Below are positions 36,092 to 41,004 of a DNA stretch of 64,000 nt, piece after piece. The stretch lies in assembly GCF_000002075.1 (NCBI RefSeq), contig NW_004798157.1:218433-282432 (forward strand), in the 5' to 3' direction. Position 1 is the stretch's first letter. Each line of letters begins with the position of its first letter. The notes beneath the pieces are model-generated. The model had not been told where the DNA came from. It worked only from the letters and a program-made list of their open reading frames with translations, and did not search any database. Made by a program: the position numbers and the translations under genes. Source of the DNA: Aplysia californica (lineage: Eukaryota).

Positions 36092-38931
36092 TTAATGGTA
36101 CAGGTTGTAATATCTGTTGTATGGGCGGTAACCATTGTAACCATTGTGATAACTGGGCCTGTAATAGTTGTAGCCATAGCTGGGCACTTGGTAAGTGCTT
36201 TGGTGGCCATAGCTGGGCACTTGGTAAGTGCTTTGGTAGCCGTAGGAGGCGTCGTACCTCTTGTGTGCGTCCTCAGCGTAACCATAGCGACGGTACTGGG
36301 CTTGGCTGTAGTACCCTGGAGCATAAGCAGCGCCTCTCTTGTGTCTGTAAGAATGGGCGGGGGCGGGGACGTATTGGTGGACGTTTCCGTAAGTGACGTC
36401 ACTGTGGCCGGGGTACTGTCCGTAATGCCCTCTGGCGGCGGCGGCCAGATAGAGGTGTTGCTTAGTGCTGTAGGAGTTGTCTTTGTTGTAGCTTGAATCA
36501 TAACCGTGGACGTAGTTCTTTCCATAGCCGTGCTGGTTGTTGTAGTCGTTGTAACCGTACCTGGACGATAGAATAGGCCAACACTAACAATATCATCTTA
36601 GCACAGACTGAGCCCACCATTTCGGAACTTCACGGTGACATTTAACCTTATCCGTAAGCCCTATATGCTGTATTCTTCACATTTTTAGAATACATTGTAC
36701 TTCTTTTGCGAAGATCTCTTCGAAATTTTCTGTATTTCTCAAAAAATCATTTTCACAGACTGCTATGCAAAGTGTACTGATCGGACTAACGAGTAAATTT
36801 CCTCTTTGGAAAGTGGGGGGACAGAGTTCCCCACATCATATGGATGCGATAGTAAAACACGACGTACGGATAGGGTTAAGATGGTTCCAGTGGGGAACGG
36901 GATAGAGGGTGCCCACGTCCCTCGTGACTCATTGGAGCAGAGAAAGATTGGACTAGTGTTAACTTTACTAAAAAACTAAAACACAATCCCACTTCATCAC
37001 TCGTCACCACCGTTATTTCTAAAATCATCTTTGCTCTCAGATCCTTGACTTACATCTCTATAATCCCTGAATCTCTATCTGTAACAGTTACATGTTATAT
37101 TAAGTATACATAATACGCTATTGGACACTATCATACGCATTTTTTTCGACTAATCAGATGGCGTCAACCTCATATAAATCTGTCCCCGTCGTTTTATGCA
37201 AAAATAAACACTTCTGAAATTAAGCAAAATGACCCCAAAAATGTGAAATTATGCGATTCTGTTAATTTTTACTAAGAATGGTAAAGGAAAATAATCAGAA
37301 ATAATGCAAAAAATGATCAAATTTTGCTAAATTATGCGGGGTGCATAAAACCATGGGGACAGATAAATTGGCATTGGATAAAACAAAAAATTATTTTAAA
37401 AATCGTACCTGGCTGGGTGTCCGTAAGAGTACACGTCATGGCTCTGCTCCTGGCCGTACACGTGGCCGTTGTAGGAACCTTTCCTGCTGTAGTCAAAGTA
37501 CTTGTCGGCGTAGTAGTTACGTCTGGGAGCGTAGCCGTAGTCGTTGTGTCCGTCGTAAGCGTAGCCGTCTCGGACGTATCCGTGGGCCTGGTCAGAGTAA
37601 TGTCCAGATCGGTCGTAGCCGTAGGAGCGGGACCTGCAAGGGGAGATAACAACTGGTTCTCTTATTCTCAGTTCACACCGAAGAACGCTTTGTTAAATCT
37701 GTATTAGATTGTGTTATTTATATATATTTGACTCCACTTGAGTTGTTGTTTTTTAACGCAGACTGCTTCATAATTCATATCTTTGAATAGGATTTGGAAG
37801 ACCAGAGATATCTCCCTTTCAACAAAGCTGAGGATTTTCAATTCAAATGTGAAATCAGTCCTATTGTATGGATGGGAGACCTGGAACATATCAATATCAC
37901 AGACTTGCATAAAGAGGATCCAGGTTTTCTTGAACAAGTGTCTAAGAAAGTTACTGAGGATCAGATGGACAGACAGGGTTCATCAACGAGGAAGTGTTAC
38001 GGAAAACAAGACAGATCACAGCCAGAGATGAGGTAGGAAGAAGGCGGTGGCGATGGATTGGACATACTTTCACTATTCTCAGGAAGTCAGACAACTGCAT
38101 AACAATGAAAGTGTTGAATTGGAATCCACTGGGTAAAAGATCAAGGGGAAGATCGTGTGGAACTTGGAAAAGAATCACAGAAATGGATGTACAGAAAAGT
38201 GGGAAGACATGGAACAACATCAAGAGGCTAGCCCAGGATAGAGAAAGGTGGAAAGTGTTTGTCCGTCGCCTATCCCCTGATCCAGAGTGAGAAAGGCGAC
38301 GATGATGACGATGAAGGATGGGGCAATACTGGCCAGGGCACACTATATCAATGTAAACTGTATTTACTTCATCACATTTGTTCCATAGGCCCATAACAAT
38401 CTAACCCAGGAATGCATAGTAACCTTTTGGTGTCTTGTTTTCATTATACTGAGCTCAATGGGGACGAGAAGATTAATTGTGTTTCGGTTCAGATGTATAT
38501 ACATAATATGTAGCTTCTATTATATATAAAAGGAAGTCCTGAAGATGTTAATAACGACTAAGAGTGAGAACAACAATAAAGACAGCATAAAAAAACAATA
38601 TTGATAACGTCAATAACCACAACAGCAAGAAAAACAGCAACAAAAGTACCAACAGTAGCCGTAAAGAAAAATTATGCCTTCCCGCAACGATACTAAAACT
38701 AAAACTAGCATAACACAACAGCACTATCCTCACAACAACGTCAGCATCTACAACAACAACACCACCACCTCCAACAACAACAATAACAATTAATCATTAC
38801 AACAACAATATCAACAACTACAATTATAACAACATCAACTTACAACAACAACAACGATAATAATTATCATAACAGTAGCTACCATAATAACAATATCAAC
38901 TACAACAATAATAATAGTAACAACGACGATG

Positions 38932-38994
<63 letters not shown>

Positions 38995-40863
38995 GTAATA
39001 ACAACGACATCTATAAAATGACAACAGTATAAGCAGCCGCACCAGCACAACAGACGACTCACCTGTCTGCCTGTCTGTACGCCACAGGGTAGCTGGCCGA
39101 CACGCAGCATGCCACAATGGCGAGGACTGCAAAGGTCAGGGTCGTCTGGGGGGACAGAAAAGGTCAAAGGTGAAGGGGAAGTCACAGAAAGGTGAAGAGG
39201 AAGTCAAAGAAAGATCAAAGGTGAAGAGGAAGCTACAGAAAGGACAAAGGTGAAGAGGAAGTCACAGAAAGGTCAAAAGTGAAAAGGAAGCCACAGAAAG
39301 GTCAAAGGTGAACGGGAAGTCACAGAAAGGACAAAGGTGAAGAGGAAGTCAAAGAAAGATCAAAGGTGAAGAGGAAGCCGCAGAAAGGTCAAAGGTGAAT
39401 GGGAAGTCACAGAAAGGACAAAGGTGAAGAGGAAGTCAAAGAAAGGTCAAAGGTGAAGAGGAAGTCACAGAAAGGTCAAAGGTGAATGGGAAGTCACAGA
39501 AAGGTCAAAAGTGAAGAGGAAGTCACAGAAAGGTCAAAAGTGAAAAGGAAGCCTCAGAATCAGGGAGAAGACACACGAGGAACNNNNNNNNNNNNNNNNN
39601 NNNNNNNNNNNNNNNNNNNNNNNNNNNNNNNNNNNNNNNNNNNNNNNNNNNNNNNNNNNNNNNNNNNNNNNNNNNNNNNNNNNNNNNNNNNNNNNNNNNN
39701 NNNNNNNNNNNNNNNNNNNNNNNNNNNNNNNNNNNNNNNNNAGCGTGAAGGTACTTGGTCAGATCAGTTCCAAATAAGGGGCTGAAGTTTTAAGTTGCAC
39801 AACAATCACCGGTCTATCAAATTCATTACCATGGAAACGCTCTTATAATATCATAGTGGAGGTCGTATGATACAAAACAAAACAACACTCTGCTTTGGGA
39901 TTTTTTGTTTTGTTTTGTTTTGTTTATGTATTTTGAAATATAACCGGATTATACCTATTATCAATTATTAGCCAATGAACAAAAAGTGTGATGAAAAGTA
40001 ACCTCCCAAAAAAATAATTATCGGTGTATAGAGAATAAACGATGATGCTTTTGTCAATACTGCGGTTTTTTGCGGCTTTTCCCCTAAGATTCAGAAAGCA
40101 ATATTTTTCCCACAATATTCTAACCAGTATCTCATATTTGTCAAATATCAGAAAGTGCTTACTTGATTTCTTTTCTTAAAAGCGCGTTCCGTAACTCATT
40201 TTCAAATGAACATTCTCAAAATAAAATTGTCTTTGGAATCAATCAATACAATCTGCGGAAAAGTGAATAGGTTTAACGCCCCTTGCAACATTGTCCTGTT
40301 ATAGTATAAGAAGATGCAGAACACGCGAATTTAACGTCCATCTCCGATTGTACGTAGCCAAATTAAAAAAATTGTGTTAAGGGACTGTCCTACTATTCCC
40401 AGGGGCACAATGTTGGACTGGGCTGAGCCTCGAACCCTCGAATCGACAATCTCACGAATACGAGTCTGGTAGACCAACCACTCGACTACCACGATGACCA
40501 ACGCGACCGGAATACGCTTTGGTTATTGAACAGTAATAATACTTTTTTTTTTTAACCCACAACATCAACGCTTGTCTTTTTTATGAACTGAAGAGTATCA
40601 AATACAACGGCTGTCATTTGAAAGAACACTTTGAATTAATGTAAATCAATTTTTGTGGATAGTTGGTGGGTTGTCTCGTATCGTGTACTCCTTCTTTTCT
40701 ATCAAACTTCTATTGTCGTTAGCTCTCCTCCTTGTTTTCTTTGTATGTTACTCCCATATTTATGGTTCCTCTAACCTTCAGCACTTAAATTACCCATTAG
40801 CTTTACAACTGTCTGTAAAACAAGAGAAATAAAGATGAGTTATTTTCCGAGCATATTTACCAT
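36092..40863 (-). CDS. Secreted Tyr/Gly/His-rich protein, 259 aa; coding exons 40861-40863 (ATG only), 39063-39145, 37409-37633, 36092-36560
   Basis: GT-AG introns with phases 0,2,2; 780 nt without internal stop; signal peptide MTTLTFAVLAIVACCVSA; mature SYPVAYRQADRSRSYGYDRSGHY..YNRYYNLYH. Confidence 0.9.
37760..38312 (+). mobile_element. RTE-clade LINE 3' fragment in intron 2 of the Tyr-rich gene
   Basis: TKLRIFNSNVKSVLLYG.ETW, RRRWRWIGH, LNWNPLGKRSRGR; (GAT)-like tail. Confidence 0.9.
39152..39560. repeat. 29-bp minisatellite, about 14 units (GTCACAGAAAGGTCAAAGGTGAAGAGGAA)
   Basis: Visible tandem array abutting the exon 2 acceptor. Confidence 0.95.
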
Positions 40864-40996
40864 TTTGGGCAGTTTGTTTCGTCTCTGGCAGCAGCAGAAG
40901 TGAAGAAGACTGTGTGGGAACGTCAAGTTAGTTCTGAGCAGTCCACTCCAGACTTTCCTTCAGAGCAAGCGAACGACTTCTCCTTGCAGCAGCGGG

Positions 40997-41004
40997 CTTA
41001 TATA
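40997..41004 (-). promoter_or_regulatory. TATA box of the Tyr-rich gene
   Basis: TATATAAG on the minus strand about 135 nt upstream of AAAATG|GTAAAT. Confidence 0.7.

Follow-up and report, generated by a model that had tools for sequence, protein, structure and literature searches.

A window of 64,000 nucleotides (nt) of the Aplysia californica genome (contig NW_004798157.1, positions 218,433 to 282,432 of the forward strand) raises the following question: does the minus-strand block at 36092-41004 encode a tyrosine-rich secreted protein, as a model had proposed from the letters alone (here, the sequence-only reading), and, if so, what would such a protein do? Judged by its sequence, the four-exon locus is a real gene, and it looks expressed. 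Its product is best read as a secreted (it has a predicted leader), intrinsically disordered, cysteine-free chain. By analogy with known tanned materials, and with a probability of roughly 0.6, we propose that this chain is a lineage-restricted, disordered secreted precursor that is cleaved, condenses via Tyr, His and Arg contacts and, by oxidative cross-linking, becomes part of an extracellular material.

All positions given below refer to the window and the minus strand, unless a scaffold is named. The exon model was checked by script on the window sequence. The gene consists of four minus-strand exons and three GT-AG introns (phases 0, 2 and 2), with 780 nt of coding sequence, 259 amino acids (aa) and zero internal stops; every donor is GT and every acceptor is CAG behind a pyrimidine-rich tract. 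This confirmed the model put forward by the sequence-only reading, including its TATA box and an exon 1 that ends in ATG. The GC content at third codon positions of the Tyr frame was 0.66-0.74, compared with a GC content of 0.37-0.38 in the introns; in two neighbouring receptor genes the third-position value was 0.58. Since this value exceeds the intron GC content, and since conservation in a second copy (see below) is limited to the exons, the gene is more than a chance arrangement.

An assembly gap (39584-39741) lies wholly within intron 1. Exon 1 contributes the ATG alone, in phase 0, and residues 2-259 are therefore in frame whatever the length of the gap. The placement of exon 1 across the gap is circumstantial. 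It is suggested by the TATA box, by a short 5' untranslated region (UTR) that lacks an upstream ATG, by a good donor, by the lack of an in-frame ATG in the window sequence between the gap and exon 2, and by the NCBI protein XP_012944636.1, which opens with M immediately ahead of the exon 2 peptide. Exon 1 occurs once in the assembly. Translation may instead start at a weaker ATG followed by GT at 39832, or in an exon within the gap. Intron 1 also holds, at about 40510-40290 (minus strand), a stretch resembling a tRNA-derived short interspersed element, recognized by eye, with a B-box-like motif; ARAGORN found no tRNA in it.

Over both large exons, the program that lists open reading frames (ORFs) gave Thr-rich ORFs (36525-36067 and 37652-37332), which suggested a mucin. 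The Thr frame is a by-product, because a shift by one nucleotide turns C-ending codons for Tyr, His, Asn and Asp into ACN. When the codons of the Tyr frame were shuffled, the +1 frame of exon 3 stayed open in 77% of the trials and that of exon 4 in 34% (Thr, 42% and 33%, respectively). The Thr ORF lacks a hydrophobic leader (maximum hydropathy 0.4), and five of seven differences between the two copies alter a residue of the Thr frame. The splice phases join the leader to the Tyr frame only, and the NCBI model also uses the Tyr frame. On the strength of codon shuffles, leader, splice phases and inter-copy changes we rejected the mucin frame as the product, and the choice of the Tyr frame in the sequence-only reading was sound.

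We then compared the gene with existing records. A search with exon 4 among 5.8 billion proteins returned one protein, XP_012944636.1, a 259-aa "putative eggshell protein" of Aplysia californica. It is the protein of this gene: the exon translations map to its residues 2-28, 30-103 and 105-259. The gene is thus already annotated in RefSeq and UniRef, with an uninformative automatic name, and the description of the gene as hidden, and as one that automated annotation could easily miss, did not hold. The A. californica record, together with the predicted leader and the biased composition, agreed with a secreted low-complexity protein of a gastropod. What we describe anew is a second copy with constrained exons, and two Lys-Arg (KR) sites, one of them a furin consensus. 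We found no literature on either accession, nor on "putative eggshell protein" or "hornerin" in combination with Aplysia.

Features of the tyrosine-rich gene (window positions)
Feature	Position	Strand	Remarks
TATA box TATATAA	40998..41004	(-)	~140 nt upstream of ATG; consensus match only
Exon 1 (5' UTR and initiator ATG 40863-40861, donor GTAAAT)	40861..40975	(-)	5' end estimated from TATA box
Intron 1, phase 0	39146..40860	(-)	contains assembly gap 39584-39741 and 29-nt tandem repeat 39188-39559
Exon 2, 83 nt	39063..39145	(-)	residues 2-28: signal-peptide-like leader and first mature residues
Intron 2, phase 2, 1429 nt	37634..39062	(-)	trinucleotide microsatellite at 38732-39009
Exon 3, 225 nt	37409..37633	(-)	residues 30-103; 16 Tyr in 74 aa
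Intron 3, phase 2, 848 nt	36561..37408	(-)	GT donor, CAG acceptor
Exon 4, coding part, 469 nt including TAA	36092..36560	(-)	residues 105-259; 37 Tyr in 155 aa
RHKR, furin-type R-x-K-R motif	36335..36346	(-)	residues 176-179; present in both copies; putative site
AHKR dibasic motif	36257..36268	(-)	residues 202-205; AQKR in copy 2; putative site
33-nt tandem repeat, 2.3 copies	36170..36245	(-)	encodes 11-residue unit, core STYQVPS
Probable 3' UTR	35257..36091	(-)	first canonical AATAAA 35262; variant signals 36053, 35877

Exons 2-4 of the second copy lie on scaffold C1513 (92913-95848), where they are annotated as "hornerin, partial" (XP_005113025.1). Copy 2 is ~97% identical to XP_012944636.1, with equal exons 2-4 and intron positions. 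Exon 1 of copy 2 is absent from the assembly; C1513 ends ~900 nt upstream of the copy, and sequence comparison between the scaffolds gave nothing matching exon 1 or the stretch upstream of the gap. The copies differ in 8 of 764 coding sites (1.0%) versus 99 of 1904 intron sites (5.2%; Fisher p 8e-8). Four of the eight coding changes are silent and four alter a residue (4 in ~604 non-synonymous sites; compared with introns, p 2e-8); two of the eight lie in exon 3. The sole coding indel is 9 nt long and removes three residues from copy 2. Two changes in the 33-nt repeat (window 36205 and 36211) make a Tyr and a neighbouring His trade places and leave the composition the same. Both KR sites are present in both copies. 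The pattern suggests that purifying selection acts on both copies, or else that gene conversion has occurred.

The match between the scaffolds is limited to the gene block of ~3.8 kb, the remainder being repeats. Since the gene block alone matches, we rejected copy 2 as an allelic haplotig and take it to be a duplicate, although a mis-assembly is conceivable. At C1513:95849-95900, ~50 nt of different sequence replace the end of intron 1 and the first four bases of exon 2. The replacing stretch offers three possible AG acceptors, of which the first breaks the frame with a phase-0 exon 1 and the two later ones keep it; candidate acceptors of copy 2 include C1513:95871 and 95850. Genome searches returned no more paralogs. 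A local cluster of Tyr-rich genes was considered and rejected: neither the 96 kb covered on C1513 nor the 136 kb covered on C887 holds a further one.

The names on the two records were no guide to function. Hornerin, an S100 fused-type protein, has an N-terminal S100/EF-hand domain and long Gly/Ser repeats, and is leaderless. We rejected a hornerin identity, as the 259-aa protein has no Pfam domain and does have a hydrophobic leader. In domain searches, the TES domain (PF08034 / IPR012615) was absent from the exons, the NCBI record and the genome. The labels "eggshell protein" and "hornerin" carry no functional information.

The protein has a mass of 28.4 kDa, an isoelectric point (pI) of 9.1 and a grand average of hydropathy (GRAVY) of -1.4 to -1.6, and is rich in Tyr, Asn, Gln, Ser and Gly. 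The predicted leader has 18 aa, with a Kyte-Doolittle 11-mer mean of 3.1 in its hydrophobic core and small residues at -3/-1; a hydropathy scan showed no hydrophobic stretch downstream of it. Residues 19-259 comprise 55 Tyr (22.8%), 26 Gly (10.8%), 22 Ser, 20 Ala, 18 Arg (7.5%) and 18 His (7.5%), and contain 0 Cys, 0 Trp, 0 Met and 0 Ile. Aliphatic residues are scarce, and there are only 3 Leu, 4 Thr and 7 Lys. The hand counts of Tyr, Gly, His and Cys made earlier for this 241-aa mature part were correct. Tyr is evenly distributed along the chain and adjoins Gly 24 times, compared with 11.3 expected (0 of 20,000 shuffles reached 24); Tyr-x-Tyr was not enriched (9 seen, 11.7 expected).

Dibasic sites occur at residues 66, 79, 178, 194 and 204. 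A furin motif and two KR together appeared in 1% of shuffles, in a test chosen post hoc, after the motif had been seen. As predicted from the motifs, cuts at RHKR and at the second KR would yield pieces of ~161, 26 and 54 aa, each of them basic (pI 8.8-9.2). The C-terminal 54-aa piece, which follows AHKR, has a Tyr share of 31% and includes the 11-residue repeat. A motif scan gave no G-K/R-K/R amidation sites, no N-glycosylation sequons and no GHGxY, GGY or YGG. The exons had no Pfam match at E<=1, none was precomputed for the NCBI record, and PDB was blank.

Starting from the gene structure, the composition, the leader, the KR sites and the constraint on the exons of two copies, we infer the following course of events for the proposed precursor. 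The leader would be removed and the protein would enter secretory granules. A furin-type convertase would then cleave RHKR and possibly also the second KR, releasing the three predicted pieces. In acidic granules, protonated His together with Arg could hold the protein soluble, and at the pH of seawater Tyr-His, Tyr-Tyr and Arg-Tyr contacts could drive condensation, both by analogy with squid beak proteins (PMC6884462). Tyrosinase or peroxidase would convert part of the Tyr to the quinone of 3,4-dihydroxyphenylalanine (DOPA) or to dityrosine, as in beak, byssus and fluke eggshell (PMC9999432, PMC11727788). By the same analogy, His-catechol or Tyr-Tyr cross-links would stand in for disulfides: the protein has no Cys, and any covalent curing would therefore depend on Tyr and His. 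The jaw, the radula, the gizzard plates and the organic shell layer, as chitin-protein parts, are likely sites, and so is the egg string; the sequence cannot choose between them. Tyrosinase-family (PF00264) matches occur in the genome, unlinked to the gene: a dense array at C231:778899-919759, which presumably consists of haemocyanin units, a locus at C305:735516-746865 with a 499-aa open frame, and C862:140995-212151.

How does the protein compare with known systems? Exon-wise word searches (exon 4 against candidates of 85-271 aa, exons 3 and 4 against candidates of 142-453 aa at E<=10) found only its own cluster. Because such searches depend on shared 5-residue words, low-complexity kin that have diverged escape them, and "Aplysia only" gives the minimum range and is no proof of restriction. 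The nearest Atlas clusters were arthropod cuticle-like and prisilkin-like, with scores (0.76-0.81) at the level of chance. Pfam and PDB were also blank, and no characterised relative was found, in line with the possibly undescribed protein of the sequence-only reading. The protein would belong to a kind that is not united by homology, the lineage-restricted secreted low-complexity structural proteins of molluscs; it has a leader, no folded domain, a strongly biased composition and, within the reach of word-based searches, a restriction to its lineage.

In being secreted, cysteine-free and Tyr-rich, and in size (28.4 versus ~29 kDa), the protein resembles the vitelline (eggshell) proteins of trematodes. 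Those of flukes contain 12-15% Tyr and typically a TES domain (PMC11727788), whereas the Aplysia protein has 23% Tyr and neither a TES domain nor sequence similarity to them. With the squid beak histidine-rich proteins DgHBP-1/2 it shares a secreted, disordered, molluscan and His/Tyr/Gly-rich nature. In the beak proteins, phase separation results from the deprotonation of His and from contacts of Tyr (PMC6884462), and His-catechol cross-links are formed (PMC6884462, PMC9999432). Unlike DgHBP-1/2, the Aplysia protein is non-repetitive, with no GHGxY (0 in exons 3 and 4) or GAGFA repeats, is far richer in Tyr, Arg, Asn and Asp, and showed no homology to them. The mussel foot proteins (mfp) mfp-3, mfp-5 and mfp-6 are basic, disordered and non-repetitive, with ~20-30% Tyr/DOPA and much Gly and Arg/Asn (PMC9999432). 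The Aplysia protein is likewise basic and of disorder-type composition (GRAVY about -1.5). It differs from them in size (28 kDa versus 6-12 kDa), in having 7 Lys and hence few Tyr-Lys pairs, and in lacking Cys, and no homology was found; its 54-aa C-terminal piece is most like mfp-3 in size and in proportion of Tyr.

Gly-Tyr dipeptides and His are also found in suckerins, in shell proteins of the shematrin/prismalin type and in Gly/Tyr-rich arthropod cuticle proteins. In suckerins, Pro-bounded Ala/Thr/His modules alternate with modules rich in GGY/GGL (PMC9999432). The Aplysia protein differs in having only 11% Gly, no GGY/YGG, no Pro-bounded modules and no chitin-binding domain. Basic pI, disorder and Tyr/Gly/His richness are features of known DOPA/His materials (PMC9999432). 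By analogy, then, the protein would work like the beak proteins, mfp-3/5 and the vitelline proteins, yet it falls outside each of these groups. The structural role suggested by the sequence-only reading is plausible; the resemblance to mussel foot, suckerin and beak proteins is compositional only, the defining motifs being absent.

Several points weigh against the proposed cross-linked precursor. Composition has misled before: the eggshell proteins of rumen flukes carry Tyr yet no DOPA (PMC11727788). The Aplysia protein shows no GHGxY, GGY or Tyr-x-Tyr enrichment, and its Gly content is far below that of suckerins, beak or jaw proteins. Word searches found no ortholog, and hence no long-range conservation of Tyr, His or the cut sites. 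The comparison of non-synonymous with synonymous sites (dN versus dS) reached only p 0.06, and gene conversion could likewise keep the exons alike.

A more specific form of the proposal can be offered tentatively. The three pieces could be a Tyr-rich kit for a DOPA-based wet adhesive or a tanned coat that evolved apart from those of mussel and squid, in which the mfp-3-sized C-terminal peptide, with its 31% Tyr, would bind to surfaces. Much less sequence knowledge exists for the adhesives and tanned parts of gastropods than for mussel byssus or squid beak. If the protein is indeed a DOPA or coacervating precursor, it would offer a sequence design that is new and non-repetitive, together with a short, easily tested synthetic peptide, from an animal that is bred in the laboratory. 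It would open no new class: secreted proteins that are rich in Tyr, Gly and His and specific to a lineage are to be expected in molluscs, and annotation already includes this gene.

Alternatively, the protein may be structural without being tanned: hydrogen bonds, amyloid-like assembly or the coordination of metal by His could hold it together, as in suckerins and polychaete jaw proteins, or it could be a soft component of mucus or gel. We consider this doubtful. A richness in Tyr, Asn, Gln, Ser and Gly is typical of self-associating low-complexity chains, there are 18 His, and the Tyr/Gly/His-rich suckerins form a thermoplastic supramolecular network (PMC9999432); the Aplysia protein, however, has no Pro-flanked Ala/Thr/His beta-module and no GGY, and its His (7.5%) is dispersed and far below the 27% of the Nereis jaw protein.

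The KR sites, the signal leader, the basic pieces and the recent duplication would also suit a precursor of defence or antimicrobial peptides, released by a convertase into mucus, egg mass or haemolymph. Invertebrates do have antimicrobial proteins rich in Gly, His and Tyr. This explanation is unlikely, since the net charge is modest, an amphipathic or Cys-knotted part is lacking, and the copies show conservation instead of diversification. A neuropeptide, hormone or pheromone precursor seems quite improbable. Aplysia makes many peptide precursors, whose exon 1 commonly stops at the ATG, and the leader and the five dibasic sites would fit; against this, there is no amidation site, no peptide repeated between cut sites and no acidic spacer, and Tyr is spread evenly along the chain. 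Finally, that the Thr-rich mucin frame is the product, or that the locus is not a gene, is close to refuted: the open +1 frame of both large exons, with its 33-42% Thr, stands against the codon shuffles, the leaderless Thr ORF, the splice phases, the inter-copy changes and the NCBI frame.

Elsewhere in the window we noted two intronless genes of the rhodopsin-type seven-transmembrane class (Pfam 7TM_GPCR_Srw, 7tm_1) on the plus strand (11329-12393 and 23438-24541). They are identical in 331 of 353 residues and are likely a tandem pair of chemoreceptors. Sulfotransferase (PF00685) exons lie at 3227-3364 and 5784-5975 (plus strand), with assembly gaps interrupting them. A reverse transcriptase fragment of the long interspersed nuclear element type, in two frames, occupies about 32227-33386 (minus strand) and has many 89-94% identical copies in the genome. 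Just past the window, from C887:283015 onward (plus strand), a 575-aa stop-free frame contains IRF and IRF-3 domains; it looks like an interferon regulatory factor gene without introns and may be a retrocopy.

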